From the sequence record NC_061448.1: DNA of 64,000 nucleotides. One strand, written 5' to 3'. The notes beneath the pieces are model-generated. The model did not search any database. It saw only the letters and a program-made list of their open reading frames with translations, and was not told where the DNA came from. The stretch's first letter is position 1; the number at the start of each line of letters is the position of its first letter. Of this stretch, positions 12,234-34,771 are shown piece after piece. A program made the position numbers and the translations under genes.

Positions 12234-13004
12234 ATGAGCAACGTTGATAAAACAATGCCTGTCGGCCGCTGGGAGTTCAATGAGCCAGTTGCTTCTGTGT
12301 TCGATAACATGCTGCAAAACTCAATCCCCTCCTACGACCGTATGCGTGATCTGACCTATCGTCTGGGTCGTCAGTTCGTAACTCCCGGTACTGCTATCGT
12401 TGACCTCGGTGCGTCACTCGGCCGCGCTATCGAACCGTTCTGTGCTGAGTTCGGTGAGTATCGTTACCATCACGCAGGTGACCGTCCTATTCCTGACGAA
12501 GAAGTCGGTAACCTGTACTGCTGCTACGAAGTCGCGCCAGCAATGCTTGAGCGTCTGCGTGAAAACGAAGTGCTGAAACAGGCTAAAGCGAAAATCAGTA
12601 GCGAGTCGCTGGTGGAAGTAGACACGTTCCGCTTCGACGAACAGGTTGAGTGTTCACTCATTCTGTCTGTGCTTACTCTCCAGTTCACGCCGATTGAACA
12701 TCGTCAGCACATTCTGGAGAAAGTGTACGATAGCCTTGAGAAAGGCGGCGCGTTCATCCTCGTTGAGAAAGTTCTCGGTGATGACAACTTCCTCGACCGT
12801 CTGCTGGTAGATACGTACTACGGCATGAAAGGCGATAACGGTTACTCGCAAGAAAGCATTGCGACGAAACGTAAAGCGCTTGAGGGCGTACTCGTACCTG
12901 TCAAAGCCGCGTGGAACGAAGAACTGCTGCGCAAAGCTGGCTTCGACCGCGTTGAATGTTTCTACCGCGATCTTAACTTCGCTGGATGGATCGCAATTAA
13001 GTAA
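12234..13004 (+). CDS. cmoA: carboxy-S-adenosyl-L-methionine synthase (CmoA homolog)
   Basis: Aligns by eye end to end with E. coli CmoA: WEFNEPVASVFDNMLQNSIPSY, DLGASLG, LTLQF, GGAFILVEK, NGYSQESIATKRKALEGVL, LRKAGF, LNF. The Arg199-equivalent is retained (12870-12872). Confidence 0.88.
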   Translation: MSNVDKTMPVGRWEFNEPVASVFDNMLQNSIPSYDRMRDLTYRLGRQFVTPGTAIVDLGASLGRAIEPFCAEFGEYRYHHAGDRPIPDEEVGNLYCCYEVAPAMLERLRENEVLKQAKAKISSESLVEVDTFRFDEQVECSLILSVLTLQFTPIEHRQHILEKVYDSLEKGGAFILVEKVLGDDNFLDRLLVDTYYGMKGDNGYSQESIATKRKALEGVLVPVKAAWNEELLRKAGFDRVECFYRDLNFAGWIAIK

Positions 13005-13011
13005 GGGAAGT

Positions 13012-14277
13012 ATGATGAAAGTAAACGGGCGTATCTTAGCAATCGTGCCTCACAAGACTCTTCTGGACAGAACCAAGTCTGGTGTTGGTGCGTACATTGA
13101 TGGACTCGAAGACTATGGCTTCTGCGACTTCATCACTGACGGTGAAAACAGCTCTGTTACCAAGAGCCAGTGGTTTAACTACGGTGATACCACTCTGAGC
13201 GACGGGTACAAAGTTGGTCACATTCAAAGTGCTCTGCTCGAAGCGCTTGATCGCACTCCGTATCGTGCAATCATCTGTAGCACCTACGAAGCTGTCGAAG
13301 CTGCTGTCGGCCTTGGGCTGCCTAAGATTATGCCTGTTTACTACCGTTCGCATAACAGCTTCCTGTTGACGCAAGACCTGAACGGACTTGGTGCTGAGAA
13401 GATGCACCGTGCGCTGCTGCAAGCTCCTGTTACAGGTCTGCGTATCTTAGCGAACTGCGACTCGACTGCGCGTGTGCTGTCTGAGATTTATAAAACTGAG
13501 GCTGCTGTCGCGTACAACGCATTCAGTGTATCAGACTACAATCCACCAGCGAAGCGTAAACCCTCGCTGCTGATTATCTGTCGCTACGAAAAGGTTAAGC
13601 GTCCTACGTTTGCTGCGCGTATCGCTGCTGCGTCTGGTCTGCCTGTTCGTGTGATGACCGGCTCTGACCGTCAAGTCAAGAGCTGGGAGAAAGAGCTTGC
13701 TGATGCAGGCGTGAAAGATTACCAAGTCGTTAGCGGTCTGTTCGGTGACGAGAAGATGGCGTTCATCGGACAATGTACCGTAGCGCTTTCGTGTGCCGAA
13801 GTAGAGTCATTCGCTAACGGTGTACGTGAGACTATCCCGTACTGCCCTACGTTCGTTGTGCAAACTTCTAAGTACGATTGGGCGCGAGACTATACGCGCT
13901 TCTGCTCTGAGAACAAGCACATCCACATTCGCACTGTTGATCGTGTGACTGCGAAAGAGGTGGAAGAACTCGGCAACGAGATTGCTTACTGGGCTTGCAC
14001 TAAGTACCTGACAAAAGCTGAACGTACTACGCTGCTGACCGAATGGTGCAAGCGCGTAGACAAAGGCTGGGCTGACTTCATGAAGAATGCAGTCGTGCCC
14101 GATGACGGCAAGCCGATGAAGACCGACCTGTCGAAAGAACTCGAAGAAAAAGGCGTAGTAGACTGGTCGAAGACGCAGACGTTAATGCGTACTGTAAAAG
14201 CTATACACAAGTGTCATGCTCGTATGGGCCTGACGTTCGATGGCACCAAAATCAAAACGAAAGGGAAGAAGAAATGA
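13012..14277 (+). CDS. GT-B fold glycosyltransferase (GT4-like or phage DNA alpha-glucosyltransferase-like)
   Basis: SGVGAY near the N-terminus, ICRYEKVKRP, ESFANGVRE (ExFG...E-like). Start corrected to ATG 13012. Confidence 0.7.
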   Translation: MMKVNGRILAIVPHKTLLDRTKSGVGAYIDGLEDYGFCDFITDGENSSVTKSQWFNYGDTTLSDGYKVGHIQSALLEALDRTPYRAIICSTYEAVEAAVGLGLPKIMPVYYRSHNSFLLTQDLNGLGAEKMHRALLQAPVTGLRILANCDSTARVLSEIYKTEAAVAYNAFSVSDYNPPAKRKPSLLIICRYEKVKRPTFAARIAAASGLPVRVMTGSDRQVKSWEKELADAGVKDYQVVSGLFGDEKMAFIGQCTVALSCAEVESFANGVRETIPYCPTFVVQTSKYDWARDYTRFCSENKHIHIRTVDRVTAKEVEELGNEIAYWACTKYLTKAERTTLLTEWCKRVDKGWADFMKNAVVPDDGKPMKTDLSKELEEKGVVDWSKTQTLMRTVKAIHKCHARMGLTFDGTKIKTKGKKK

Positions 14278-15308
14278 ACGTGATTGGTGATATCTATAAT
14301 ATTCCGCAACCGTACGCGATGTTCTGTGGTAACGCCACGACGAAAGCAATGGCGAAGATCACTGCCGGTATGGTTGAGTGGGCGTCAGAGAAAGTCTGCT
14401 GTGTAGTTGACGACGCTAACAACCTGTTCCCTGAAATGCCTCACGTTGAAATTCGTGACCTCGATAAGACCGATGCAGAAACTCTGGTTATCGGGTTTGC
14501 CCCGTTCGGCGGTCAGATTAACGAAGACATTGATCGCGCTATTCGCTCTGCGCTGTCTCGTGGCCTGAACGTTGCTGCTGCGCTGCACGTTAAGCTGGCA
14601 GACAATGCTGAATACTGCGCTCTGGCTAATCAGTATGGAGTGAAGCTGTATGACTTCCGCCACCACCCTGAGCAATATCCTCTGGGCACTGGTCTGCCTC
14701 GTGCCGGTGTTCGTGTTCTTACTGTTGGTACTGACTGTTCGTGCGGTAAGAAATACACTGCACTCGCACTGACCAAGAAGCTGACCGAGCTGAAACAGAA
14801 AGCTGTGTTCTGCGCTACAGGCCAAACGGGTTTCCTGATTAGCGGTCGTGGCATCAACAACGACACTGTGGTTGCTGACTTCCTTGCTGGTGCTGCTGAG
14901 TGGCTGTCACCTGCTGACGAAGAAGCTATCTATCTGATTGAGGGTCAAGGTGCGCTGCGTCATCCAGCTTACACTGGTGGCAGCATGAGTCTGATTGCTG
15001 GCTCTCAGCCCGACGCTCTCGTTGTCTGCCACACTGTTGGCCGCAACTTCATGCTGAACACCGAGCGTGAGATCAACCTCGTTGACGAGATCGCTGCTAA
15101 CATCGACGCTGCTGCGATGCACGACTGGTACCCTAAAGTTGTTGGTATCAGTATCAATTTCTGCGAAGTGAAGATGACGAAGAAAGAGCGTGAAGTATAT
15201 CTGCGTAGTCTTTCTTTGAGCAGTGGCTACGTGGCTTTCGACCCACAAGCCGGCGGTGAAGAGTTCGACCGCGTTGCTCACTACATCACGACGCTGAAAC
15301 GCCGATGA
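14274..15308 (+). CDS. DUF1611 family protein (DgcN-like, P-loop)
   Basis: VGTDCSCGKKYT, ATGQTGFLI, ADFLAGAAEWL, IEGQGALRHPAY, GSQPDALVVCH. Confidence 0.85.
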   Translation: MNVIGDIYNIPQPYAMFCGNATTKAMAKITAGMVEWASEKVCCVVDDANNLFPEMPHVEIRDLDKTDAETLVIGFAPFGGQINEDIDRAIRSALSRGLNVAAALHVKLADNAEYCALANQYGVKLYDFRHHPEQYPLGTGLPRAGVRVLTVGTDCSCGKKYTALALTKKLTELKQKAVFCATGQTGFLISGRGINNDTVVADFLAGAAEWLSPADEEAIYLIEGQGALRHPAYTGGSMSLIAGSQPDALVVCHTVGRNFMLNTEREINLVDEIAANIDAAAMHDWYPKVVGISINFCEVKMTKKEREVYLRSLSLSSGYVAFDPQAGGEEFDRVAHYITTLKRR

Positions 15309-16249
15309 AAGTCTTAATCGACCGTGCCGCGTTAGCGAGTAATGCGGCCTATTTAAACTCACTCGCTCCGTCCATGATTCCGGTTGTGAAAGGTAATTTC
15401 TACGGACATGGTTTAGATTGCGTGACAGCATTCGCCTTAGGGTTTGAGGTGCTCGCAGTTCATAGCGACCGCGAAGCACTTGCGCTGCGTCAGTTAGAAC
15501 TCGACAACACGCTGTTAGTTCTCGGCGGCACCGACAGTCTCATGTGGAATACAGTGCCTGTGCTGAACGCAGAGCAAGTCGGTACGTATGGAGGCCGATA
15601 CGCTGTGTTTGCTGATTGGGGTTGTCGTCGTATCAACGTCAAACCTGAACAGCTTACGCATCCACCAGCGTTGATTCTCGTTCACTCGGATGACTATCGT
15701 GTGCCTGTGTCTGAGTACGACGCTAACGAGATCGCCCAGCGCTACAACGTGCCTCTGTCTATGCTGTCTGTTGGTTCGAGCATGAACGTGCTTAATCAAT
15801 ACGCACCGAAGTTGAAGCCGCGTGTTGGCATGGCGCTTACCGGATATAGTAGCGATGAAACTGTGAACGGTAATTTGTGCGTAGCGAAGACAGTGCTTGC
15901 TCGTATCTGCGATAAGCTGGATGCGGGCCGAGTATTCGGTTACGGTGCATTAGTACCGAACTGCGCGGACAAGTTCTTGTACTCGATTGATGTGGGTTAC
16001 TACGACAACCTGTATCAGTCTGACAACAACACACCTGTGCATTGCCCTGACGTGCCACACGCGCAAGTCACGTTGCTCACAGGCGTTGCCCACGCAATCA
16101 GCATGAACCATGCCTTCGTATTGTCAGATACTGAGCTACCGTTTGACTCCGATATTGAACTACTCGGACCTAACGTTCGCGCAGACTATCTGGCTAAACT
16201 TCACGGAACAACAACTGCGAATATTTTAAGGCTGGGTAATCATGGCTAA
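15305..16249 (+). CDS. alr: PLP-dependent alanine racemase-like enzyme
   Basis: VVKGNFYGHG (PLP Lys29), PRVGMALTG, GYG, VGYYD, ISMN (vs VCMD). Confidence 0.82.
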   Translation: MKVLIDRAALASNAAYLNSLAPSMIPVVKGNFYGHGLDCVTAFALGFEVLAVHSDREALALRQLELDNTLLVLGGTDSLMWNTVPVLNAEQVGTYGGRYAVFADWGCRRINVKPEQLTHPPALILVHSDDYRVPVSEYDANEIAQRYNVPLSMLSVGSSMNVLNQYAPKLKPRVGMALTGYSSDETVNGNLCVAKTVLARICDKLDAGRVFGYGALVPNCADKFLYSIDVGYYDNLYQSDNNTPVHCPDVPHAQVTLLTGVAHAISMNHAFVLSDTELPFDSDIELLGPNVRADYLAKLHGTTTANILRLGNHG

Positions 16250-17111
16250 ACACGTTTTGCGCAAGCTGTTTGAACAGCACGTTAAAGCAGAGGTCAAAGA
16301 CAACAAGGTGGCAGTGCTGCTGTCCAGTGGTCTTGACGGACTCGTTAGCGGGCTTGCTGCCCATGACTTAGGAAAGAAGGTACACGCCTTTACTTTCCAG
16401 ATGGGCGACAACGAAAGTTTCGACAGCAAACACGCGCGTAAAGTCGCAGAGAAGATGGGCTGGGAGTTCACGCTTGTGAAAGTACCGACGTCTGACAGCG
16501 CTATCGTGCAGGGTTGGAAAGCGCTTCACGCGAAGTACCGCTGTGTTAAGAAGCGTGACTATGAGTGTGCATATCCTATGGTGTATTGCTACAAGGCAAT
16601 CAAGGATGCAGGTTACAAGTACGTACTGAGCGGCCTTGTCGCTGATGCTTACTTCTGTTTTGCGCGTAACACTCACATCGCTAAAATCAGCGGCCCGCAT
16701 AGCGTACTCGAAAAGTTCGACGAGTATCGCAAAGCATACTGGGCACCGTGGTTCAAGAACGGTAAGAAGTCTCTCGGCGTTGACGGTTATAACCCAAGCG
16801 GTATGCTGCAACACGAAATGCTGTGCGACTCTTTCGGCCTGACCCACGTTAACCCGTGGCTGATGAAGAAAGTCCATGACTACTTCATTGGTCGTTCGTG
16901 GCAAGAACTAAATCAACCCAAGCAGAAAATGCCAATAACAGAAGCATGGGCTGATCACATCGCGGTTGTAGGCCATCGCCCGCATCGCGGTTATCAAACA
17001 GAAGCTGGAGTACCTGCGTACTTCGAACGCTTACTGGATAATCCTGAGATCAACTTCAACGGTCGCAAGCGTGTTATGGATCTTGCGCGTGATTGGTCAA
17101 CGAGGACTTAA
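16242..17111 (+). CDS. asparagine-synthetase-like ATP-dependent amide ligase lacking the glutaminase domain (CmoY-like candidate)
   Basis: PP-loop VAVLLSSGLDG, FTF, D...ARKVAE, YVLSGLVADAYF; only 289 aa with no Ntn domain. Confidence 0.75.
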   Translation: MAKHVLRKLFEQHVKAEVKDNKVAVLLSSGLDGLVSGLAAHDLGKKVHAFTFQMGDNESFDSKHARKVAEKMGWEFTLVKVPTSDSAIVQGWKALHAKYRCVKKRDYECAYPMVYCYKAIKDAGYKYVLSGLVADAYFCFARNTHIAKISGPHSVLEKFDEYRKAYWAPWFKNGKKSLGVDGYNPSGMLQHEMLCDSFGLTHVNPWLMKKVHDYFIGRSWQELNQPKQKMPITEAWADHIAVVGHRPHRGYQTEAGVPAYFERLLDNPEINFNGRKRVMDLARDWSTRT

Positions 17112-17112
17112 T

Positions 17113-17733
17113 ATGTTTGTACACATCATTGACGGCAGTGTAGGCGGAAACTACGTAGCGGAGAAACTGCGTGAGGCAAATATCAATTGCCGCGTTCACT
17201 CTCCAAACAACCCACGTGTTCGTGCTGTTCATGCCCCGTACCCTTCTCTTTCGATGGGTCACACAGAGCAGGAGATTGACCATCATATCAGTCAAGTGCT
17301 CGGTACGTTTCGTGGTCTGTTCTTGATTAGCAGCTACGTGGGTTCGCTGGTGGCTCGCAACATGATTGACCAATGTGGCCAGAGTCACAACATCATTTAT
17401 TGCGATGATCTGCAATGTGGATCTATGCCTGTTGTTGCTTCCTCGATTTCTGTAAATGTATATCAGAAGCAACGACGACTCGGACGTATCGCTGGTCGAC
17501 TCAAGCACTTCGATGTTGACCACGAGTTCATTGTCGCAGACAAGGCTGTGCGTTTCGCGGCAGGGTCAGAGTTCGATGAACACGATGCACGTAAAGAACT
17601 GGACGACACGCCTAAGTTCTTATCGAGTCCGTCAATGATTGTTGCTGCACACAAACTCGGTGTGAAGCGCAGCATGTATCACAACTATGCAGGTCTGGTG
17701 CGAGAGTTCCTTGAAAAGCGCCAGCAGCAATAA
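17113..17733 (+). CDS. possible divergent Asp/Glu racemase (MurI)-fold protein
   Basis: N-terminal HIIDGSVGGNYVAEKL resembles MurI IGVFDSGVGGLSVL; the catalytic ACNTA motif is not clearly retained. Confidence 0.4.
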   Translation: MFVHIIDGSVGGNYVAEKLREANINCRVHSPNNPRVRAVHAPYPSLSMGHTEQEIDHHISQVLGTFRGLFLISSYVGSLVARNMIDQCGQSHNIIYCDDLQCGSMPVVASSISVNVYQKQRRLGRIAGRLKHFDVDHEFIVADKAVRFAAGSEFDEHDARKELDDTPKFLSSPSMIVAAHKLGVKRSMYHNYAGLVREFLEKRQQQ

Positions 17734-17745
17734 CGCGAGGGCACG

Positions 17746-18009
17746 ATGATTAATCGCTTTCAGTTAAAACGAGTTCCGGTGATTCAAGCCTGTCAGTGGA
17801 ACGGAGAAAACGTTGAGGAGATGAATGAGTTTCTCAACGGCAGCGGTTACGTTGTAGGGCGTTACGTTCAAATCGGAGTGACTGACCAGTATGGTAAGCC
17901 GACTCTTGCAAACGTAGCAGTTGGCAACTACGCAGTGAAAAACGAAGACGGTAAATACGACGCGATCACTGCGTCTGACCTGCACACTAATTACGTGTTG
18001 GCAGATTGA
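17746..18009 (+). CDS. conserved phage hypothetical protein
   Basis: KRVPVIQACQWNGEN N-terminal pattern common in phages; GAGG SD. Confidence 0.7.
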   Translation: MINRFQLKRVPVIQACQWNGENVEEMNEFLNGSGYVVGRYVQIGVTDQYGKPTLANVAVGNYAVKNEDGKYDAITASDLHTNYVLAD

Positions 18010-18013
18010 GGGA

Positions 18014-18472
18014 ATGATGAATCTTTTTTCTATTCTGAAACAGCAAGTGAAGAAAGCGCTGTCTACCGAAGCGAACCACGAACCGGAAGTACGCGCTCTG
18101 TTTGACTGGCGATACTCTGTTGAGATCAAAGGTCAGATGTACATTGTCGGCAAGACAGGGGCGAACACCTGCTTCTATATCGAGCCGGGAACGTCTGAGC
18201 CTATCGCGTGTTATCCTGACAAGTTGATCGAGAAGATTGACGAGTGGGGAGGCAGCAAGTACGTGTCGTTTGCAATCTACTTCAAACACTTCGACAGCCC
18301 GGTCGCCGAGAACTTAAAGACTCTCGAAAAGGCAATGTCCGGCAAGCCGAAGACGTTTAAGAAGGGTTACTTCATTTGCGGTGTAACTCCGAAAGGCAAG
18401 CGCATCAAACTCTATCGACTGCAACAGGGACTTAGCGGTATGCAGTGGGTGGAAGTCGAACCTAAAAAGTAA
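18014..18472 (+). CDS. hypothetical protein
   Basis: GAGG SD. Confidence 0.75.
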   Translation: MMNLFSILKQQVKKALSTEANHEPEVRALFDWRYSVEIKGQMYIVGKTGANTCFYIEPGTSEPIACYPDKLIEKIDEWGGSKYVSFAIYFKHFDSPVAENLKTLEKAMSGKPKTFKKGYFICGVTPKGKRIKLYRLQQGLSGMQWVEVEPKK

Positions 18473-18500
18473 TCACGGTCTGTCCGTGTGAGGAGCAAGT

Positions 18501-18794
18501 ATGATTAGTGACATTACAGAAGGTCACATTTATAAATCCCCAGGCAATAATCCCTATCAAGTGGACAGCATTGCCGCACACGGACAACATCAAGAACTCC
18601 AGATGATCGTCTACACTAACCTGTCAGACACTTCTGGTTTCCCTATCGGAAAGAAGTTAGTTCTTGAGCGTCATGTGTTCTGCAATCTGTTCTCTGAGTA
18701 CAATTCAGGAGAATACCATGAGCACAACAACGCTGTATCAACATCTGCTGACGAGAGGCCTAAATCCTGGCTCTTATCATTGCTGGCTAAGTGA
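18501..18794 (+). CDS. DUF1653-like SH3-fold protein
   Basis: GHIYKSPGNNPYQVDSIAAHGQHQELQMIVYTNL. Confidence 0.6.
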   Translation: MISDITEGHIYKSPGNNPYQVDSIAAHGQHQELQMIVYTNLSDTSGFPIGKKLVLERHVFCNLFSEYNSGEYHEHNNAVSTSADERPKSWLLSLLAK

Positions 18795-19234
18795 AACGCA
18801 AATGACCGTGCCGCTGTTCGGCTTTGACAGAGCACTGCGTGGTCTACAGGTCTACACACCAGATGCACCAAAGCACGACGCTAACCCGAAAGCATGTCGT
18901 TACTTCACGCAAGCATTCGGTGGCAAGCAGTTGGTGTGGGGATCAGAAATTAAACCTGTGCGGGTCGACCGTTTTCTTAACTGAGTCAGTATTCAAGGCA
19001 TGTGCGCTTCATCGTCTTGGACTCAACGCTTGGTCCGTTCTGGGTTCTGATGTTAGTCTACATCTCTATCGTCAGTTGCGTCTTCTAGGTCTACGCTTCG
19101 TTTGTCTCGGTGACGACGACGCAGCGGGTGAGAAATTCAGTCAGACGTTTAGACTGGGTGCCACCAGCAAAGACCTCGATGAAATGACAGACGAGGAACT
19201 TCTCGATTTAACAATGCCCTTCGTGAGGAAGTAG
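18718..19234 (+). pseudogene. primase-related Toprim protein split by a +1 frameshift (about 171 aa if joined)
   Basis: Frame A from ATG 18718 runs to LVWGSE and stops at 18984. Frame B continues LNLCGSTVFLTESVFKA...LGDDDAAG...KDLDE. Removing one A from GAAATTAAA (18946-18954) restores a single ORF. Confidence 0.65.
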
Positions 19235-19257
19235 CCCTGAAAACTTTCTGCGTGATA

Positions 19258-19856: not shown

Positions 19857-19870
19857 TTCGGAGCGCAAAC

Positions 19871-20806: not shown

Positions 20807-21649
20807 ATGACCGTAATCAGTCCTATTCGTTATCAGGGCAATAAGCGAAGCCTTATCCCTCTTATTCTCGAACACACACCAAGCGTACAAGACTGTCCGC
20901 GTATGGTTGATGTGTTTGGCGGTAGCGCTACTGTCTGTGCGAACATGCCGCAGAAGTTTCGCGTCTACAACGAACTGAGTCCTCAGGTGTTTGAGATCGT
21001 CAAGATGCTTGTCGAGCAAGACCCGAAGAAAACTCTAGGTCAAGTCAAGCGTCTGGTGAAGCACTGGTGTCTGACAAACAGCAACGAAGAAAACTACGAT
21101 GCGTTCCGCGAAGTCGTCCAGAAGAAGCGAACGCCTATCTTGCATTACGTTGCGCACAGACACGCGCACTCGAACATGCTGCGATTCAACCAGCAGGGTA
21201 TCTATAACGTAGGCTTTGGCGATCGTGGTCTGATTGGTAAGTTCGATGAACTCGCCGATGAACTCACAACGTTTCACAGTCACATGCAGGGCGTTCACCT
21301 GACGAACATGAAGTACGGTAAGCTACTCGGTCGTCTAGGCAAACAACTGGACTGCAACACGTTCTGTTACTTTGACCCGCCTTATCTTGCGAGCGGTGCG
21401 ATGCAGTATGGCAAGTGGACTGAAAGCAATGAGCGCAACCTGCTTGCTACTCTCGAACATCTCAATCGTCTTGGCGTACCGTGGATGTTGAGCAACGTGA
21501 CAGAGCACCGACACTTCTCAAACGATTTGTTGAAGCGCTGGTTAAAGAAACACGCGACAACCGTGCTCTATCCAAACAAAAGCTATGCGATGAACAACGG
21601 TCAGAGTGGCTCGCATGGTACTGTTGAAATTCTGGCAATGAACTATTGA
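20807..21649 (+). CDS. dam: DNA adenine methyltransferase, T4 Dam-like (D12 class)
   Basis: YQGNK, VDVFGGS, HSNMLRFN...FG, YFDPPY. Confidence 0.88.
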   Translation: MTVISPIRYQGNKRSLIPLILEHTPSVQDCPRMVDVFGGSATVCANMPQKFRVYNELSPQVFEIVKMLVEQDPKKTLGQVKRLVKHWCLTNSNEENYDAFREVVQKKRTPILHYVAHRHAHSNMLRFNQQGIYNVGFGDRGLIGKFDELADELTTFHSHMQGVHLTNMKYGKLLGRLGKQLDCNTFCYFDPPYLASGAMQYGKWTESNERNLLATLEHLNRLGVPWMLSNVTEHRHFSNDLLKRWLKKHATTVLYPNKSYAMNNGQSGSHGTVEILAMNY

Positions 21650-24152: not shown

Positions 24153-24658
24153 ACGAATTACCGATGAACCTCGATCAAGCTGAACACATCATGGCCAGTG
24201 TGTTTACGCTTGCTGGTGCGTCGAAGTCAAAGCGTCGTGCTACTGCTGCGATGCTCATTCATTTCCATCACGGCTTTCCGACTGTAATCAGTAGCGGCGT
24301 GAACGGTACACAGCCGGGCGCGAGCAACGTCATGGAGAACGAAGACCTGACGCTTTCGCTCGACACTGTTATTCATGCTGAGGTGAATTGTCTCAATCGC
24401 ATGGAAGAACACAGCATGTGGGCAGAAGAAGAGGACATCTTGTTCTGCACTGATTCGCCGTGTCCGAACTGTCTCGCTGACCTCGAAGCTGAGGGCGTTA
24501 AGACAGTTGTGTATGCGCGTGAGTATCGCCTGACTGATCATCTCGACGCATCGAAGATCAAGATGTTCTGTCTCGATATGGACAGCGTTGTCCGACGTAT
24601 GCAGCACGGTATCGACCGCATCAATGACGTAATCGCAACAACACCAGCGTCTAACTAA
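24137..24658 (+). CDS. dCMP deaminase (zinc-dependent cytidine deaminase family)
   Basis: SGVNG, HAEVN, SPCPNC. Confidence 0.85.
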   Translation: MRCNLNELPMNLDQAEHIMASVFTLAGASKSKRRATAAMLIHFHHGFPTVISSGVNGTQPGASNVMENEDLTLSLDTVIHAEVNCLNRMEEHSMWAEEEDILFCTDSPCPNCLADLEAEGVKTVVYAREYRLTDHLDASKIKMFCLDMDSVVRRMQHGIDRINDVIATTPASN

Positions 24659-27229: not shown

Positions 27230-27866
27230 TATCCTGAAAGCTATTCCTGCAATCATCCTGTGCTATCTCGTCTGGCGTTATGTCACTAAGAAAGTCGAAC
27301 GTGATCGCCACTTGATTAAGGCGCAAGAGCAATACAATCGCGGTCGTCTTGATCGCGGTAACGTCTGGATTCATTTGAAGACAGGTCGTCCTTATACAGT
27401 GCTCGGTCTGACCAACACAGGCGTGAATAAGTCCAACTGGCGTAATGATTGGGAAATCAATGTCATCTACACCAACGACTTCGAACAGATCTGGAACAGA
27501 CCGTTCAGTGAGTTCTGCCACAAGTTCACGCACGTTAGTCGCGGTGAAAATGAAGAACATTTCACTATTACACTGATGGGTATGCAGATGGAGGCCAACA
27601 CTCGCATCCTTATTCCTCGTGAAGGTGAGATGTGGTTTGAAGGTACTGTACACGCAACACCGCCAGAATTAGTAGCGCAGGGTCATGCACCACAGGTTGT
27701 GTCTCAACGTCGTGCGCACATTGATATGGTGCTAGGCGTAGGCGAAGCGCATCCGGTCGTTGTATATACTGTAAATGAAAAGCAGACAGCAATGTTGCTT
27801 TCGCAATTCATTTTCATCTATCGCAAAGAGGTGTCCTTCGATGGAACAACCAGCTCTTGTGTTTAA
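27219..27866 (+). CDS. membrane-anchored DUF1653-like protein, paralog of the upstream gene
   Basis: N-terminal TM; WIHLKTGRPYTVLGLTN...VIY; IPREGEMW vs LPQEGERW. Confidence 0.7.
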   Translation: MLFDILKAIPAIILCYLVWRYVTKKVERDRHLIKAQEQYNRGRLDRGNVWIHLKTGRPYTVLGLTNTGVNKSNWRNDWEINVIYTNDFEQIWNRPFSEFCHKFTHVSRGENEEHFTITLMGMQMEANTRILIPREGEMWFEGTVHATPPELVAQGHAPQVVSQRRAHIDMVLGVGEAHPVVVYTVNEKQTAMLLSQFIFIYRKEVSFDGTTSSCV

Positions 27867-28188
27867 ATATGTGATGTTCGTTAGGACGCGCAACAAAGAG
27901 CGTACTGACGGCGTTCACTTGCCTGTTATCTTCCCGACTCATATCATGCACTCTGATATGGGGGATGCGATGCGTGGCTACGGTATGTCTAATGGTTATC
28001 AGGACAATCACTACCACCAGCGTGTTGAACCAATCTCTGCGGGCTTCATCAATCTGCGAACGCTTCAATGCTTCGGTGAGTCTGAATCTCTGGAACTGAA
28101 ATCACGTCCAGAAGACAGCGCGATTATCGCAGAGTACATGAAGACTCAGGGTAAAGGTGCAGAAGCTCCGCCGGAGGATGACGAGTAA
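27841..28188 (+). CDS. hypothetical protein
   Basis: GAGG SD; start corrected. Confidence 0.65.
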   Translation: MEQPALVFKYVMFVRTRNKERTDGVHLPVIFPTHIMHSDMGDAMRGYGMSNGYQDNHYHQRVEPISAGFINLRTLQCFGESESLELKSRPEDSAIIAEYMKTQGKGAEAPPEDDE

Positions 28189-28526
28189 TGGACATTCTCA
28201 AAGCATTCCTGAACAGTCCGTTTTGGGCCAGCCCGGCCTCAGCGTTCGTCGTGCCTGTCGTGCTTATCGGTTTCTTTATCACGACCGAGTATCTTGAGCG
28301 CAGAACGTTTCGTTTGTCTCGCAAAGCATTCGCAGACGGCTGGGACCCGAAGAAGAACACACGCTTTCGTCACAAGTGGTTTCCATTCATGACGTGTCGC
28401 GTTGACTTCTATTCGAACAGTCCGAACGACAAGTTCACGCCGTCAGTATTCGTTCAAAGGGGTGGTGGGCGTTACGTTGAATTGCCCGCCTCTGTCTTAC
28501 GTTATCGCTATAACGAGATCAAATAA
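28188..28526 (+). CDS. small membrane-anchored protein
   Basis: N-terminal hydrophobic helix; TAATG coupling. Confidence 0.7.
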   Translation: MDILKAFLNSPFWASPASAFVVPVVLIGFFITTEYLERRTFRLSRKAFADGWDPKKNTRFRHKWFPFMTCRVDFYSNSPNDKFTPSVFVQRGGGRYVELPASVLRYRYNEIK

Positions 28527-28876
28527 TGCCTCCTGTAATTCGTTTCAACGAGCAAACCCGCGAACTGCTGAGAAAGACATTCGGCATTGATTCACCTTTC
28601 ATTGTCGTGCGTCGTGAGCGCATCATCGAAGACGATAAGCCTTTCGGTGAGCGTGTCTATTTGAACAACGGCATTTACACCGTGACCGTACCTAACGTAC
28701 AGGGTCTCGATCTCGGCGATAAGCTGTATCTCGCAGAAGATATGGAAGTGTATGAGTGGCACCCGCACTTCGGTCTTCATCCTACCATCTATCCTTCTGT
28801 AAGCAACAACCAGAAGACTGCGCTCTCATTCGGCCTTCATCCTATCATCTATCATAAAGACAGTCGGAACTCTTAA
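28526..28876 (+). CDS. hypothetical protein with a short internal repeat
   Basis: FGLHPTIY / FGLHPIIY. Confidence 0.7.
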   Translation: MPPVIRFNEQTRELLRKTFGIDSPFIVVRRERIIEDDKPFGERVYLNNGIYTVTVPNVQGLDLGDKLYLAEDMEVYEWHPHFGLHPTIYPSVSNNQKTALSFGLHPIIYHKDSRNS

Positions 28877-29979
28877 TGAACAAGCAACCTCTTGATCTGC
28901 GCGATCCAAATCAGTACGAAGTTTATTCTCTGCATTGCGTAGACGAACAGTACATCAACCTCGGTAACGCTATTCTGGCTTGTGGTACTGACGAGCACGA
29001 CAACGGCCGCACCAACGATTCGTGGCGTACTCTGATTGGCATCGGCTTCCAGTTATCTAACACGTTGATCGCTTTCCCTGCGTTGCTGTCTGCGCGTAAG
29101 AACTGGTACGCTGCTGTTGATGAAACCTGCTGGTTCATGCGCGGCGACACGAACATCAGTTCGCTCAACTCCAAAATCTGGGACAGCTGGGCAGACGAAG
29201 ACGGTGAGTGTGGTCCTATCTATGGTCTGATGTGGCGCATGTGGCCTGACATTAAAACGTTCCCGACTATTGAGTCGATGAAAGAGCGTCAGATCAGCGA
29301 TGCAGAAATCGAGCGCATCGCCAAAGAAATCAATCGCATGAAAGCGGCAGGCTACACTGAAACAGAAATGGCCGATGGTCGTGTATGCTACGAAGGTACG
29401 ATTGACCAGTTCGCTAATGCGCTGCGTGACGTTATGGATCGTTCGCGCTCCCGTCGTATTCGCGTTCAGGCATTCAACCCAGGCTATCAGCATATGCAGG
29501 GTCTGCCTCCGTGTCATACGGAGTTTGAGTTCAATGTGACTCAACCAACTCCGTATGAGATTGCTCAGATGGAGGCGCGTGGCATGGCATCTTCCGACGC
29601 ATCGTTGCATATCGTTGTGACCATGCGTTCCAATGATGTGCTGCTGGGGCGTCCCTTCAACATCATGGGCTACAGCGCAATGCACCAACTGATTGCCAAG
29701 TGGGCTGGGTTGAACGTCGGTAGCTTCACGCTCAACACGACGAACACGCACCTGTACACGCATCACTTCGAAGCGTTCGAACAGCAGAAGCAACAGTGGG
29801 CAGCGCTCAGTGATCTGATGAAGAAAACTGGTCAGCCTATTCAGTACCCGCTGCTCGAAATCAGCGACGACATTCTCGGCCTGACGCCGGAAGAGTTGTT
29901 GGACAACGCAAACGCCGAGTGGTTCCAACTTCTCGACTACTCCCCTGCACCAATGGTTAAAGGACGTGTGACCAAATGA
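28876..29979 (+). CDS. thyA: thymidylate synthase (ThyA/Td type)
   Basis: GPIYG, SRRI, LPPCH, MRSND, GRPFN, NTHLYTHH. Confidence 0.92.
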   Translation: MNKQPLDLRDPNQYEVYSLHCVDEQYINLGNAILACGTDEHDNGRTNDSWRTLIGIGFQLSNTLIAFPALLSARKNWYAAVDETCWFMRGDTNISSLNSKIWDSWADEDGECGPIYGLMWRMWPDIKTFPTIESMKERQISDAEIERIAKEINRMKAAGYTETEMADGRVCYEGTIDQFANALRDVMDRSRSRRIRVQAFNPGYQHMQGLPPCHTEFEFNVTQPTPYEIAQMEARGMASSDASLHIVVTMRSNDVLLGRPFNIMGYSAMHQLIAKWAGLNVGSFTLNTTNTHLYTHHFEAFEQQKQQWAALSDLMKKTGQPIQYPLLEISDDILGLTPEELLDNANAEWFQLLDYSPAPMVKGRVTK

Positions 29980-30617
29980 GCTTCATTCTGATTAAGCGCC
30001 TCAGTGCGTTCATGTACGTAGGCTACGCAGAGAAAGAGCTGTATATTCCTCGTCGTGGTGTTGAGCAAGTTCACGTTGTCATCCCTGACCCGAAAGGCGA
30101 CGACGAACCTATTCTGGACATGCGAGCGCGTTGCATCTATCATCTGCCGCACAACTGTTTCATTCTGCAAGCAACGCAGGACGACGAAGCCTCTGAGACA
30201 ATGTGTGCTATGAAGTCGCATTGTCAGTACAACGAAGGTCTGTTCCAGAAGTCAGTGCATGGTCGTGAACAAGCTGCCCTTAGCCTGATCATGAACGAAC
30301 TGCGCGATGCAGAAACAGACCATCCGACGTGGCCGGAAGAATGTATTCACGCTGCGTCTATCGTCGTCGAAGAAGCAGGTGAGTTGTTGCGTGACTGCGC
30401 TACGTTTGAAGAAAACGGTGATGAACGTCTGATCGTTAACATGCAGATGGAAGCGGTGCAGACAGGCGCAATGGCTGTGCGTTTCCTCAAGAATCTGCCG
30501 TTCAGCCAGAAGCGTACAATCCCGCACAACGCACTGCGTTCTATCCTCGATTCTGAAATGACACCAGAAGAACAACTGATCGAGTTGCGTCGTCTGGTGC
30601 AAAATGGAGTGAGCTAA
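29976..30617 (+). CDS. protein with a C-terminal MazG-like NTP pyrophosphohydrolase domain
   Basis: IVVEEAGELLRD...EAVQTGAMAVRFL. Confidence 0.6.
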   Translation: MSFILIKRLSAFMYVGYAEKELYIPRRGVEQVHVVIPDPKGDDEPILDMRARCIYHLPHNCFILQATQDDEASETMCAMKSHCQYNEGLFQKSVHGREQAALSLIMNELRDAETDHPTWPEECIHAASIVVEEAGELLRDCATFEENGDERLIVNMQMEAVQTGAMAVRFLKNLPFSQKRTIPHNALRSILDSEMTPEEQLIELRRLVQNGVS

Positions 30618-31507
30618 TGAAGCTATTAGGATATGCTGCATGTGGCGGCACACCCTTTCGTATTCTGCGCGTAGAAGACAATGGCCAACTCACTGACGGT
30701 ACACACGAACGTATTGACCTGTTCGGTTGTATCTTCACTAACGTTGACGTGTCACACGACATTGATACCGGTCTGGCTATTCTCGCTCTGCCTACAGCGA
30801 ATGACTGGCGTGTTAATCTGACCAACCCTATGTTCACTAAAGAGTACATGGACTGGTTCAATGGCTACTCGCCGACAATCGAAGTCCTGCTCGATGCACA
30901 CAAGCTGAAAGCACTTCTGCCTAACATCACGCAGGAGTTTGACCAGTTCGTTGCGTGGCTGAAAGAGCAAGTAGCGAAGATGCCTACGCTCGAAGTTGTC
31001 TTTGATCGTGACACACTGAAAGCGGTTAAGACAGGAAACAAGTACGACATTTGGATGTTGTACAAACACTACCTGATGGTCGACGGCAATCTGATTGTGA
31101 CGCGCAACCCTGAAGGCGATGTTATCTTCCACGATGCGCACATCTCTGAAAAGGGTACGCAGCATTGGTTGCTTGAGCACAACAAAGAGATGATGCGCCT
31201 TGCAGCGGAAAACGATCTGCTTGCAGCGTACATCACTTTCGGCGTTGACCGTGGCAGACCTAACTACCAGTACACGTTCGTTGCGCACGATGGTGGCTAC
31301 ATGCACCGTCCAGTAGATGATGCAGAGTTCACGCACATCTCAATTCGCGGTCAGAGGCCTGTCGTGTTGTTCAAAGATGAAGGTGCTAATCTGAATCTCA
31401 CTGTCAACATCGACCAGCACTTCCCGCAGAAGTATCTGGACTTCACGCGTACTGCTCGCCCTACCATCGGCTACAATCACGCGCTGAATCTGATTCGTTT
31501 CATCTGA
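30617..31507 (+). CDS. hypothetical protein
   Basis: 296 aa, TAATG coupling. Confidence 0.75.
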   Translation: MKLLGYAACGGTPFRILRVEDNGQLTDGTHERIDLFGCIFTNVDVSHDIDTGLAILALPTANDWRVNLTNPMFTKEYMDWFNGYSPTIEVLLDAHKLKALLPNITQEFDQFVAWLKEQVAKMPTLEVVFDRDTLKAVKTGNKYDIWMLYKHYLMVDGNLIVTRNPEGDVIFHDAHISEKGTQHWLLEHNKEMMRLAAENDLLAAYITFGVDRGRPNYQYTFVAHDGGYMHRPVDDAEFTHISIRGQRPVVLFKDEGANLNLTVNIDQHFPQKYLDFTRTARPTIGYNHALNLIRFI

Positions 31508-31557
31508 GGCGCTGTCTCTTGTTCAGCATAATTTAAGTGTCTAACAGGAGACTTGCC

Positions 31558-31893
31558 ATGAAATATGATCCGAAGAAAGACTTCCATCCCTTCCAGTATC
31601 TGGGCGCGCCTAAAGTTCCGCACACAGGCTTCTTAGGCAGTACAGTGAACTTAGTCGAGAACGACGTAAACATCGGTCAAGACGAATGCACGTTTGAGTT
31701 CACTGTCGCCCAGATGAATGAGATGGACAGAGGTACTGTTACGTTCCGGGCGAAAGACTCGGGCGGAGGTATCGACATTAAGAAATGCTCGGTCTCTGGT
31801 CTGAAAATGGTAATTAAGCTGGACCGTCGCGTTGTACAGTTCGGCAAAGTTCAGGTCGAATGGCAAACGACACCCCGACACTATTACTACTAA
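31558..31893 (+). CDS. hypothetical beta-rich protein
   Basis: AGGAG SD; start corrected. Confidence 0.7.
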   Translation: MKYDPKKDFHPFQYLGAPKVPHTGFLGSTVNLVENDVNIGQDECTFEFTVAQMNEMDRGTVTFRAKDSGGGIDIKKCSVSGLKMVIKLDRRVVQFGKVQVEWQTTPRHYYY

Positions 31894-31903
31894 TCTGTAA
31901 AGA
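31892..31903 (+). promoter_or_regulatory. AATCTGTAAAG motif (putative promoter) before the ParB-MTase pair
   Basis: about 32 nt before ATG 31936. Confidence 0.5.
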
Positions 31904-31935
31904 CAGAGAAAGAGCAACCGATAAGAGATACGACA

Positions 31936-32640
31936 ATGGCAAAAACTGCTATCAAAGCAAAGGACGGAAAAAAGAAAGACGGGTTGAAGTTTGATCTCAA
32001 AAAACTCAACTCAGTCGCTCAACTGAAAGGCGCTGACTATAACCCGCGTTTCATTACAGACAGTCGCTTGAAAGCACTCGAAGGTTCTTTGGGTAGCTTC
32101 GGCGACTTGTCTGGTATCGTGTTTAACAACAACGTCAAATCCGGTGTGTTGATCTCAGGCCACCAGCGTCTGAAATCTATCGACGGTTGGAAGACTCGTA
32201 TCGAGATCCAAAAGACCGTTGACAAACACGGCACTATCGCTCTGGGCTACATCCACGCGACGCATCCGAAGAAGTCTGATAAAGTGATCAGCATTCCTCT
32301 GCGTATCGTGAACTGGACCGATAAGAAAGCGGAGTACGCAGCGAACATCGCAGCGAACGCCCACGGCGGTGAGTTCGATAACAAGAAGCTCGCCAAGCTG
32401 GTGGAAAAACTCGATCTCAACACAATCAAGCCGCAGTTACTCGGCCTTGACCCGTTAGAGATTCGCGGTCTGCAACAAAAGCTGAAAGTACAGGCTGTTG
32501 TGCAAGACGACAAACGCGCTGGCAAGACTACCGGCCAGATGAACGGTAGTACCGGTAAGTTCAATGAGTACAACGCTGACGATGTTGGCGATACTCTGAA
32601 CTGCACCTGCCCGCGCTGTGGATTTAAGTTCGAGGGATAA
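31936..32640 (+). CDS. ParB/Sulfiredoxin-like N-terminal domain protein with a C-terminal zinc ribbon
   Basis: YNPRFI, SLGSFG, ISGHQRL, NAHGGEFD, CTCPRCGFKF. Confidence 0.8.
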   Translation: MAKTAIKAKDGKKKDGLKFDLKKLNSVAQLKGADYNPRFITDSRLKALEGSLGSFGDLSGIVFNNNVKSGVLISGHQRLKSIDGWKTRIEIQKTVDKHGTIALGYIHATHPKKSDKVISIPLRIVNWTDKKAEYAANIAANAHGGEFDNKKLAKLVEKLDLNTIKPQLLGLDPLEIRGLQQKLKVQAVVQDDKRAGKTTGQMNGSTGKFNEYNADDVGDTLNCTCPRCGFKFEG

Positions 32641-32641
32641 T

Positions 32642-34771
32642 ATGATCATCAAGCCGCCTACGATGAAGGAAATCAACAAGCTGGATAAACCCTGGCGTGG
32701 TATGAGTTTCTTCGCAGGTTGCGGTGGTTCTTCTACCGGTCACAAGATGGCCGGTATCAATATCTTGCTGAGTAACGAGTTTGTTGACCCAGCAAGAGAG
32801 TCATACGAAGCGAACCACCCGACAACGAAAGTGCTGCCTCATGACATTCGCCGCCTCGACCCCGGTAAGCTGTTACGTTACTGCGGTCTGGATAAAGGTG
32901 AACTTGATTTACTTGACGGTAGTCCTCCTTGCTTTACCGAAGACACTATCATTCATACAGCAGACGGCATGAAGTTCATCTCGGACATGAACGTCGGCGA
33001 CAGAGCGATGACCAGTGTCGGGCAGTATTACCCTGTATACGACACAATGGTCAGACCGTATGTCGGTACGATGCACAAAGTCGAAACGCTGATCAGCAGC
33101 AACAACGCAACGCCTGAGCATCCGTTCTTTGTTAGACGTGCGCTGGCGGAAGGCGGTTACTCTGATCCGTTCTGGTGTGATGCGAAAGACGTGCAAGAAG
33201 GCGACTTGCTTGGCACTCCTCGCGTTACGCCTGATCAACAGCCGGGCGTGTATTACGATCAGATTGCGCAACTGCCGAAGATGATTCAGCAGTGGGTGTG
33301 CATCCCTGAGTTCTGGTGGATGGTAGGACACTGGTGTGATCGCGGTTCAATCGAAACAGTTAGCGGCGTTGAAGTCGTTAGCTTCGAATCGCACACCAGC
33401 CTTGAAAACGCGATGATTGAGCAGGCGTTTGACGCGCTTAAACTCAGTAGCCTGAATCGCATTGACACGATGACTGCGCAACGCAAAACGTTCCGTACTG
33501 TTATCGACGCAGAGCTGGTGCAGTTCTTACGCCGCTTCGTCAGTCAAGGCAACAACACGTTCTCCCGTCGTCTGCCAGCAATGATGTTCCACATGAACAC
33601 CGAGTTGAAACAACAATTCATTCTCGGTTGTGCGGGGCATGACTATGTGACTGCGATGGGCACTGGCCTTGCTATCACATCAAACAGCAAACGCTTCCTG
33701 CTTGAGCTTAACTACCTGTGCTGTTCTGCATTCAATCGTCCTCTGTTTGACGGAATGATTTGGGGAGATGTTTACTTCGGTAGTCCACTGACGCCGCGCG
33801 AGCGTAACAGTTCGCGTGAGCACATCGGCTACCTGTTCTTGCAGGACGAGCACAACTTCTTCCACGAGTTCAGCGATAGCGATTCACATCTCTGGACCGA
33901 AGTGATTGAGAACCTTGCGTATCAGGCAACGTGCGACGTGTACAACTTCTCTGTTGAAACAGACGAAACGTATGTGGCTAACGGTGTTGTCGTTCACAAC
34001 TGCAAAGGCTTCTCGACTGCTGGCGTGAAAGAAGAAGGCTGGGGCAAAGAAGTTAAGTACAGCGACAATAAATATCAGCAGGTAGATGACCTGTTCGATC
34101 AGTATTGTCGTATGCTGCAAGGTATGCAGCCTAAAGTGTTCACTGCGGAAAACGTTAGTGGTCTTGTGAAGGGAATCTCGAAAGGGTACTTCCTTGAGAT
34201 CATGAAGACGTTCGACAAGCTCGGCTACTACGTGCGAGCACCGATGTTGAATGCGTGTTGGCTCGGTGTACCGCAGTCGCGTGAGCGTATCATCTTCATG
34301 GGTGTGCGCAAAGACGTAGCACATGCGCTTGGTTATAAAAATGCGCGTGAAGCTGTGCCTGATGTTATCCCGTGCGATACGCAAGCCTTCCTCGGCGATG
34401 CGTTGCCTCACATCTTACGATACAAGACGACGCAGAAAGACCTGATCAAGTATCTGCCCTCAGTTAACGGACCGATGCCAACGATTACAGCGTCTGATGC
34501 AATCGCGTATGAAACAGCGCGTTTCTCGTCTGCTGGGTTTATCGAAGACAACAAAGGTCATCGCCGTAAACTGACTATCGACGAACTGCTGGTAGTTTCG
34601 GGAATGCCGTCTGACTATAAGCTGGTTGGCAAATTCGAAGAACAGTGGGAACGTCTTGGTCGTGTCTGTGTGCCAGCAATGACACACGCAGCATCGAAGG
34701 CTTTCATCGAACATATTCTTTTGCCTTACGCGAAGAAGAAAAAGAAAAAGCCAGGCGATATATTTAAGTAA
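32642..34771 (+). CDS. C5-cytosine DNA methyltransferase-fold enzyme with an intein; predicted carboxymethyltransferase (CmoX-like)
   Basis: Motif I FAGCGG, IV SPP-C-KGFS after splicing, VI ENV, VIII QSRERI, IX RKLTIDE...GMPSDY, X LGRVCVP (Arg at the canonical GN Asn). Confidence 0.88.
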   Translation: MIIKPPTMKEINKLDKPWRGMSFFAGCGGSSTGHKMAGINILLSNEFVDPARESYEANHPTTKVLPHDIRRLDPGKLLRYCGLDKGELDLLDGSPPCFTEDTIIHTADGMKFISDMNVGDRAMTSVGQYYPVYDTMVRPYVGTMHKVETLISSNNATPEHPFFVRRALAEGGYSDPFWCDAKDVQEGDLLGTPRVTPDQQPGVYYDQIAQLPKMIQQWVCIPEFWWMVGHWCDRGSIETVSGVEVVSFESHTSLENAMIEQAFDALKLSSLNRIDTMTAQRKTFRTVIDAELVQFLRRFVSQGNNTFSRRLPAMMFHMNTELKQQFILGCAGHDYVTAMGTGLAITSNSKRFLLELNYLCCSAFNRPLFDGMIWGDVYFGSPLTPRERNSSREHIGYLFLQDEHNFFHEFSDSDSHLWTEVIENLAYQATCDVYNFSVETDETYVANGVVVHNCKGFSTAGVKEEGWGKEVKYSDNKYQQVDDLFDQYCRMLQGMQPKVFTAENVSGLVKGISKGYFLEIMKTFDKLGYYVRAPMLNACWLGVPQSRERIIFMGVRKDVAHALGYKNAREAVPDVIPCDTQAFLGDALPHILRYKTTQKDLIKYLPSVNGPMPTITASDAIAYETARFSSAGFIEDNKGHRRKLTIDELLVVSGMPSDYKLVGKFEEQWERLGRVCVPAMTHAASKAFIEHILLPYAKKKKKKPGDIFK
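32930..34000 (+). mobile_element. 357-aa intein inserted just before the catalytic Cys; degenerate LAGLIDADG-like region
   Basis: Block A CFTEDTIIHTADG, block B ATPEHPF, relics MVGHWCDRGSI and FILGCAGHD, blocks F/G VYNFSVETDETYVANGVVVHN, +1 Cys. Confidence 0.92.

Follow-up and report, generated by a model that had tools for sequence, protein, structure and literature searches.

A likely DNA hypermodification system built on 5-carboxymethylcytosine, with candidate tailoring enzymes, in Erwinia phage pEa_SNUABM_1

The first 64 kb of the genome of Erwinia phage pEa_SNUABM_1 (NC_061448.1/MZ443776.1), hereafter called the window, contain two groups of genes that are likely to form one phage DNA hypermodification system, built on 5-carboxymethylcytosine (5cxmC) which would be amidated and then tailored further. 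pEa_SNUABM_1 is an Alexandravirus, a jumbo phage with a genome of 266,939 bp, and its host is E. amylovora. Over the operon the window agrees with this genome at 100% identity, with identical coordinates. Locus 1 (gp016-gp021, 12234-17733, plus strand) holds six genes in the order cmoA, glycosyltransferase, DUF1611, alanine-racemase-like (Alr-like), ligase and MurI-fold, with junctions of +10, -4, -4, -8 and +1 bases. Locus 2 lies about 15 kb from locus 1 (gp050-gp051, 31936-34771, plus strand) and its two genes are separated by 1 base. An earlier reading of the bare DNA letters (the original prediction) had named these eight genes at these positions and called the six-gene operon tightly coupled, and the junctions of +10 to -8 bases bear this out. 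In RefSeq, gp016 is labelled 'tRNA methyltransferase' and gp050 ParB-like, and the remaining six genes are hypothetical. The features are listed below in window coordinates.

12234-13004, plus strand: gp016, CmoA-like carboxy-S-adenosylmethionine (Cx-SAM) synthase (TIGR00740, 4GEK, SpCmoA).
13015-14277, plus strand: gp017, probable glycosyltransferase of the GT-B/GT4 type; about 130 amino acids at its C-terminus form an extra region (family matches).
14274-15308, plus strand: gp018, DUF1611/DgcN family protein (PF07755, 8.3e-49; PF17396, 4.6e-17).
15305-16249, plus strand: gp019, pyridoxal phosphate (PLP) enzyme of the alanine racemase family, 314 amino acids (PF01168, 6e-11).
16242-17111, plus strand: gp020, predicted CmoY-like, AMP-forming amide ligase without a glutaminase domain (Asn_synthase, 6.5e-15).
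17113-17733, plus strand: gp021, glutamate-racemase-fold protein with Ser74 and Ser172 (AlphaFold2 model and Foldseek).
31936-32640, plus strand: gp050, ParB-like protein with a C-terminal CxxC zinc-ribbon-like tail (phrog_620, 2.4e-31).
32642-32929, plus strand: gp051 N-extein, amino acids 1-96, CmoX motifs I-III up to GSPP (56% identity to SpCmoX residues 22-98).
32930-34000, plus strand: gp051 intein, amino acids 97-453, 357 amino acids (CFTEDTII start, TPEH block B, VVVHN end).
34001-34771, plus strand: gp051 C-extein, amino acids 454-709, with Cys454 and Arg674 (alignment to SpCmoX/8YF3).

The original prediction leaned on a CmoA/CmoX/CmoY route to a glycine-bearing cytosine, and such a route does exist in Synechococcus phage S-B43 (Yang et al., Nat Commun 2025, PMC12783734). 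There, CmoA makes Cx-SAM. SpCmoX, a C5-methyltransferase homolog (structure 8YF3), then makes 5cxmC at GC sites, with SPPC as its catalytic motif and with Arg350 touching the carboxymethyl group of the cofactor; the wild-type enzyme accepts Cx-SAM only. Finally, the AsnB-like SpCmoY performs ATP-dependent ligation of glycine, through the glycine alpha-amine. The same paper counts 5,615 CmoX, 4,257 CmoA, 2,251 ligase and 1,660 ParBc candidates in phage contigs, and in many of the CmoX contigs a ParBc protein accompanies CmoX. According to its authors, other ligase clusters probably use other amines, and the range of amide modifications on the 5cxmC handle is left unknown at its end. As supposed earlier, pEa_SNUABM_1 carries homologs of the whole pathway. 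It shares with S-B43 the three enzyme families (31% identity for CmoA, 35% for spliced CmoX and 34% for the ligase), the SPPC motif, the Cx-SAM-binding Arg and a ligase without a glutaminase domain. Like many CmoX contigs of that paper, it has a ParBc protein beside CmoX.

gp051 (32642-34771, 709 amino acids) is a C5-methyltransferase interrupted by an intein. Its best PDB relative is SpCmoX 8YF3, at 5.7e-53 for the unspliced and 7.9e-59 for the spliced protein, followed by the HaeIII methylase at 8.4e-18. The inserted region matches the intein profiles Intein_splicing (3.9e-07), Hint_2 and TIGR01443 (4.6e-06). When the intein is removed, the junction reads GSPP-C454-KGFS, which is motif IV and aligns with S95-C98 of SpCmoX, so Cys454 is at once the +1 residue of the intein and the catalytic Cys of motif IV. 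In the alignment gp051 also keeps the adenine and ribose contacts of SpCmoX (F25, E47, F48 and D69). Arg674 (R317 after splicing; nucleotides 34661-34663) lies in ERLGRV and aligns with R350 of SpCmoX in ERVGRM, a position that is Asn in C5-methyltransferases dependent on S-adenosylmethionine (SAM). The same Arg is present in the ortholog on the metagenomic contig L009. By its SPPC motif, its Arg350 equivalent and its nearness to SpCmoX, gp051 is assigned as a putative CmoX; the motif, this Arg and the cofactor contacts also served as criteria in PMC12783734.

The metagenomic contigs used for comparison are L007, L008 and L009 from ENA, L004 from Logan SRR26596593 and L024 from Logan ERR14654846. 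The CmoX ortholog of L009 (1712-2737) is free of an intein, has 341 amino acids and 49% identity to gp051, and aligns without a break over the junction. The CmoX of L007 (L007:7783-10014) has an intein at the same site which is 24% identical to that of gp051. Because the same insertion point holds an unrelated intein in L007 and none in L009, the catalytic-Cys site of CmoX is a recurrent intein homing site. The intein at the catalytic Cys of the putative carboxymethyltransferase makes its activity depend on a post-translational step.

E. coli CmoA (EcCmoA; 4GEK) aligns with the whole of gp016 at 3.5e-31, and the characterised SpCmoA shares 31% identity with gp016; SpCmoA, itself active, is only 27.9% identical to EcCmoA. 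The TIGR00740 match (4e-43) scores 147.8 bits, under the equivalog cut-off of 193.3, and that to NF011995 scores 112.4 bits, under the cut-off of 285. Arg199 of EcCmoA, next to the invariant Lys198, was compared among EcCmoA, gp016, SpCmoA, L004 and L008 and then dropped as a CmoA family marker, the residue being Glu in the active SpCmoA and Lys in L008.

gp020 covers the synthetase part of AsnB-type enzymes only (positions 2-133 of the Asn_synthase profile and 235-369 of asn_synth_AEB) and has the PP-loop SSGLDG at amino acids 28-33. SpCmoY is its nearest relative outside its own phage group, with 34% identity (blastp 2.8e-51; tblastn 3e-35). Two other ligase types in sister phages are about as near to SpCmoY as gp020, or nearer. 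The ParB-like gp050 also matches phrog_498, annotated 'DNA methyltransferase' (2e-18), and its homologs with 44% identity lie directly upstream of CmoX in L007 and L009.

The RefSeq label on gp016 points in another direction, to a phage CmoA that serves tRNA wobble modification (5-carboxymethoxyuridine, cmo5U) or SAM depletion, with gp051 as an ordinary 5-methylcytosine methyltransferase. SAM depletion by CmoA is itself raised as a possibility in PMC12783734. Nevertheless, this explanation is very improbable in our opinion. No CmoB homolog was found in pEa_SNUABM_1 or in the other complete phage genomes of our collection of 50,697 phage records; the sole CmoB match in the collection comes from a 3.4-kb Salmonella record without annotation, with 93.5% identity to E. 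coli cmoB. A tRNA-modification role of gp016 was rejected because the phage lacks CmoB. Moreover, gp051 has Arg where SAM-using C5-methyltransferases have Asn, the wild-type SpCmoX with that Arg takes no cofactor other than Cx-SAM, and CmoA adjoins CmoX in other phages.

The two loci had been taken as one system, and the metagenomic phages agree with this. In L007, L008 and L009 the genes for ParB, CmoX, glycosyltransferase, DUF1611, ligase and CmoA stand in one gene run, and the gp016-gp021 and gp050-gp051 loci are therefore related. L004 has CmoA, the glycosyltransferase, DUF1611, an Alr-like protein (38% identity to gp019), the ligase and then a 3-deoxy-D-arabino-heptulosonate 7-phosphate (DAHP) synthase. 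The identity of the metagenomic cassette proteins to those of pEa_SNUABM_1 ranges from 36 to 76%.

Beyond the core enzymes, locus 1 encodes four accessory proteins. gp018 carries both DUF1611 domains and a P-loop, GTDCSCGKKYT, at amino acids 152-162 (nucleotides 14727-14759). It matches the NCBIfam model for DgcN, NF041892, at 4.9e-87 with 291.9 bits, which does not reach the equivalog cut-off of 480, and it matches PDB 7XRJ over its full length at 2.1e-56. That PDB entry is the D-glutamate acetyltransferase DgcN (Yu et al., ISME J 2023). gp018 resembles DgcN of the DgcN-DgcA pathway in its two domains, in the conserved GTDxSxGKxYT P-loop and in the full-length alignment, but it is encoded by a phage, lacks a DgcA-type epimerase partner and sits inside a DNA-modification operon. 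By its score we regard it as a predicted DgcN family homolog and not as an equivalog. The homology of gp018 to a D-glutamate N-acetyltransferase adds a further link to D-amino acids that the original prediction did not have.

gp017 itself gave no family match, Pfam PF00534 included. Its relatives are more informative: three of the eight aligned family members match Glycos_transf_1 (PF00534), the best at 7.8e-6, and the family profile finds the glucosyltransferase 9v0l in the PDB at 0.008. E264 and E272 are invariant in the family with the spacing EX7E, the signature of GT4 enzymes. Annotated phage glycosyltransferases are among the tblastn matches, and metagenomic members have 36-48% identity. 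On these grounds gp017 is probably a GT4-type glycosyltransferase. A weak relative of gp017 (23% identity, E 2e-11) is found at L025:5743-7086 in Synechococcus phage BUCT-ZZ01 (ON615601.1), where it directly follows the QueE, QueD and GTP cyclohydrolase I genes of a 7-deazaguanine cluster. This glycosyltransferase lineage may thus decorate a second kind of modified DNA base.

The family profile of gp019 aligns over positions 2-302 to the alanine racemase (Alr) 4QHR at 7.9e-12. Of its 39 PDB matches, 38 are annotated amino-acid racemases (alanine, serine VanT, lysine and broad-spectrum) and one is an 'Engineered protein'. K29, R173 and Y213 are invariant in the phage family and aligned with the motifs of Alr 4QHR and 3CO8: VKGNFYGHG, RVGMALTGY and FGYG correspond to the Lys that binds PLP, the Arg at the pyridine nitrogen and the Tyr that is the second catalytic residue. 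gp019 is shorter than its PDB matches (314 versus 356-410 amino acids). The TIGR00492 match of 35.4 bits does not reach the cut-off of 168, and the best NCBIfam match, marginally, is the VanT serine racemase.

By sequence, gp021 gave no match in searches of Pfam, NCBIfam, PHROGs and the PDB, and an exhaustive HMMER search of 1.84 billion representative proteins turned up a very small family of 5 clusters. A first AlphaFold2 model from 11 close homologs was unusable (predicted local distance difference test, pLDDT, 44). After three remote homologs were added, the model reached a pLDDT of 91 and a predicted template modelling score (pTM) of 0.88, and its top 15 PDB matches in Foldseek are all MurI (prob 1.00, TMq 0.52-0.66). 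A direct hhalign comparison of the gp021 family with E. coli MurI aligned the first 18 residues only (E 0.017), and the sequence link to MurI was therefore routed via a paralog in L024. In that contig two MurI-fold genes stand in tandem after CmoA and a SpCmoY-like ligase (L024:7399-8642). The copy of 196 amino acids has VFDSGAGG and CACNT, keeping the Cys of the ACNT motif and having Ser in the second motif; it matches E. coli MurI at 2e-6 and the gp021 family with an hhalign probability of 96.5%. The second copy is gp021-like, with Ser in both motifs. The hhalign alignment with the 196-residue copy, together with the strand-helix topology seen in the model, places S74 and S172 of gp021, both invariant in the family, at the two catalytic Cys positions of MurI (ACNT and GCTH). 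gp021 therefore shares with MurI the two-domain fold and the N-terminal (F/I)D(S/G)GxGG motif; it differs in being about 60 residues shorter, in having no Pfam/HMMER match and in having Ser for both catalytic Cys.

The earlier labels 'alr' and 'MurI-like' thus hold for family and fold, respectively, the latter according to the predicted structure. The canonical two-thiol racemase chemistry of gp021 is doubtful, and it is not expected because Ser occupies both catalytic Cys positions.

The distribution of the accessory genes among the 50,697 phage records is restricted. DUF1611 is found in 34 records and the Alr-like gene in 12, every one within the cassette, and so are all 21 strong matches of the gp017 glycosyltransferase. 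The gp020-type ligase (at least 80% identity; type A below) and DUF1611 occur in the identical records (34/34), while sister phages with other ligase types are without DUF1611. A DUF1611 scan of IMG/VR returned the same phage group only, with 9 loci. The grouping of the cassette genes is not due to chance, as they are also adjacent in metagenomic phages with orthologs of 36-76% identity. Related phages carry the following cassettes, CmoA being present in all of them.

pEa_SNUABM_2: cmoA, ligase type B, gp021-like.
Y3: cmoA, ligase type C, 2-oxoglutarate-Fe(II) (2OG-Fe(II)) oxygenase, gp021-like.
Dickeya AD1 / Alexandra: cmoA, DUF1611, ligase A, gp021-like.
pEa_SNUABM_7 (Snuvirus): cmoA, glycosyltransferase, DUF1611, ligase A.
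pEa_SNUABM_1 clade (8 phages): cmoA, glycosyltransferase, DUF1611, Alr-like, ligase A, gp021-like.

According to this series, DUF1611 works without the glycosyltransferase and without the PLP enzyme, the glycosyltransferase works without either racemase-like protein, and gp021-like proteins serve three ligase types. Such graded cassettes among sister phages suggest diversification under selection from host defences. The 2OG-Fe(II) oxygenase gene of Y3 (NC_047880.1) lies at L021:4095-4733 (1.6e-15), between the ligase and the gp021-like gene, and suggests another tailoring chemistry on the same handle.

The losses in the series could also be read differently. If only CmoA, CmoX and the ligase act on DNA, the product would be 5cxmC or a simple amide such as 5gcxmC, and the accessory genes would be auxiliary metabolic genes directed at host D-Ala/D-Glu pools or at the envelope (peptidoglycan precursors, surface glycans). 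Every accessory gene can indeed be lost with the core kept, D-Ala and D-Glu are building blocks of peptidoglycan, DgcN catabolises free D-Glu, and envelope glycans are the usual products of GT4 enzymes. However, translational coupling ties the accessory genes in between cmoA and the ligase, and in metagenomic phages they are inherited with CmoX as one operon at protein identities of only 36-49%. DUF1611 and the Alr-like gene are confined to the cassette, DUF1611 follows one ligase type without exception, and the weak glycosyltransferase relative adjoins a cluster for 7-deazaguanine DNA-base modification. We consequently hold the core-only explanation to be unlikely. Physical linkage, exclusivity and co-distribution all argue that the accessory genes belong to the DNA pathway.

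Under the preferred explanation, hypermodification with further tailoring, the following mechanism is proposed. The steps of Cx-SAM synthesis, splicing, C5 carboxymethylation and amidation are drawn from homology to characterised enzymes, and the later ones purely from gene context. gp016 would convert SAM and host prephenate to Cx-SAM. gp051 would first splice out its intein, joining GSPP to Cys454 and restoring motif IV; the spliced enzyme, probably aided by the ParB-like gp050, would then transfer the carboxymethyl group to the C5 of cytosine in phage DNA, with Arg674 holding the carboxylate of the cofactor. gp020 would adenylate the new carboxyl and form an amide with an amine. To judge from the gene context, this amine may not be simply glycine and the product may be processed further: gp018 could N-acylate a free D-configured amino group, whether this belongs to the residue already ligated or to the amine ahead of its ligation, gp017 could add a sugar, and gp019 could supply the D-amino-acid centre or form it in place. 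gp021 may contribute a binding or non-thiol activity common to several ligase types. The final base would be an aminoacyl-carboxymethylcytosine bearing acyl and sugar groups, and it would protect the phage DNA against nucleases of the host.

The most specific form of this proposal is a residue with a D-centre (D-Ala, D-Glu or an epimerised diamino acid) amide-linked to 5cxmC and then N-acylated and glycosylated. We put it forward tentatively, as a possibility that is rather doubtful in this full form. The involvement of D-amino acids as such is plausible, and the predicted DgcN homology of gp018 strengthens it. The product of DgcN is N-acetyl-D-glutamate, of which an N-(cytosin-5-ylacetyl)-D-glutamate adduct would be a substituted analogue. 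If the specific form is true, SNUABM_2, Y3, AD1 and SNUABM_7 carry stepwise simpler or alternative versions, and a single phage group on one host would hold a natural combinatorial set of 'glyco-peptidyl' DNA bases.

Several points weigh against the tailored DNA base and should be set out together. The Alr-like gene, the glycosyltransferase gene and gp021 are each missing in some sister phages that keep the ligase at 81-84% identity. As the ligase is this similar with or without a phage Alr-like protein, it cannot strictly need a phage-made D-amino acid, and the dependence assumed in the original prediction does not hold in its strict form. D-Ala and D-Glu are made by the host anyway. gp016, gp018 and gp019 all score under their NCBIfam equivalog cut-offs, for which reason they are homologs and not proven isofunctional. 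gp017 has no family match of its own, and hhalign gave no significant alignment to WaaG or WaaB, two GT4 enzymes of E. coli. gp021 has the two Ser replacements described above. A literature search found no paper reporting the DNA composition of pEa_SNUABM_1. Finally, an alpha-amine is closed to a PLP racemase and to an N-acetyltransferase once it is in an amide. It follows that gp019 and gp018 would need free substrates, unless the compound that is ligated offers them another amine, as in compounds of the Lys, Orn or diaminopimelate type.

The latter option leads to the same system with another chemistry. Here the amine coupled by the ligase would sit on the side chain or at the distal end of a diamino compound (Lys, Orn, diaminopimelate or a diamine), or it would already have been mono-acylated by the DgcN-like protein. 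The free alpha-amino-acid end would be epimerised on the DNA by the PLP enzyme and locked as an N-acetyl-D form by gp018, and no free D-amino acid would be ligated. A free amine is required by PLP racemases as well as by N-acetyltransferases, and none would remain in an alpha-linked amide; lysine and broad-spectrum racemases are among the PDB matches of the gp019 family; DgcN has been described within an irreversible racemisation route for D-amino acids; and the strict pairing of DUF1611 with one ligase type fits a common substrate. On the other hand, this scheme is pure inference, AD1 and SNUABM_7 have DUF1611 without a PLP enzyme, and in the nearest ligase that has been characterised, SpCmoY, it is glycine's alpha-amine that forms the amide (PMC12783734). 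We give it little weight.

Returning to the preferred explanation, a tailored base on the 5cxmC handle, the comparison with S-B43 defines what is new. In pEa_SNUABM_1 about 15 kb separate the two loci of the system, an intein splits the CmoX gene product at its catalytic Cys, the ligase is a separate type always paired with a DgcN-like DUF1611 protein, and the operon includes a GT4-like glycosyltransferase, an Alr-family PLP enzyme and a MurI-fold protein. The main text of PMC12783734 makes no mention of Erwinia, racemase, DUF1611, intein or jumbo phages, and it mentions glycosylation for hydroxymethyl-base systems only. A literature search found no later paper on CmoX or CmoY. The novelty expected earlier therefore stands for the extension by accessory enzymes and falls for the core system, which was published in 2025. 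The DgcN-like, GT4-like, Alr-family and MurI-fold proteins and the intein at the catalytic Cys are new here, being absent from the published description.

Phage hypermodifications of hydroxymethyl-pyrimidines include the glucosyl-5-hydroxymethylcytosine of T4 and the amino-acid-derived 5-hydroxymethyldeoxyuridine adducts of the ViI/M6 type, and such systems sometimes involve PLP enzymes acting on DNA-bound residues. The system proposed here follows the same logic, a base handle first and then sugars or amino-acid-derived groups. In contrast to those systems, the handle in pEa_SNUABM_1 would be a carboxyl, put on after replication via Cx-SAM by a methyltransferase homolog, and the enzymes are unrelated.

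Taken as a whole, pEa_SNUABM_1 probably makes a DNA base not yet described, and it is very likely a culturable case in which the 5cxmC handle is extended well beyond glycine. The candidate enzymes could bring acyl groups, sugars and D-amino-acid chemistry to DNA, and about fifty sequenced sister phages of one host with graded cassettes offer a natural variant series. If the proposal is true, a DgcN-type acyltransferase, a GT4 enzyme and a fold-type-III PLP enzyme would be new activities on DNA and new tools for site-directed DNA functionalisation. It could also help to explain how jumbo phages relevant to biocontrol escape restriction and other nucleases.

Some further observations concern the surroundings of the cassette. 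The supply of prephenate for CmoA was left as a question in PMC12783734. In L004 a gene of the DAHP synthase family (PF00793, 2.4e-42) lies directly after the ligase at L004:14162-15025, and its product could raise the shikimate/prephenate supply for CmoA. Promoter and terminator scans of the window stayed at or below shuffle expectation and were uninformative. Among the genes between the two loci (17.7-31.9 kb), only a Dam-like methyltransferase, a dCMP deaminase and a ThyA-like protein came up, none of them tied to the pathway. They are gp030 (20807-21649), a Dam-type D12 N6-adenine methyltransferase; gp036 (24164-24658), the dCMP deaminase; and gp046 (28876-29979), a thymidylate-synthase family protein of 367 amino acids that extends about 100 amino acids beyond the Pfam model. 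One more gene, without an assigned function, is tentatively listed as a candidate component.

18017-18472, plus strand: gp023 (phrog_23597), 151 amino acids.

A gp023 homolog comes straight after the cassette in L004 (47% identity), and another directly follows CmoA in L008 (28%). gp023 may thus be a further component of the cassette.

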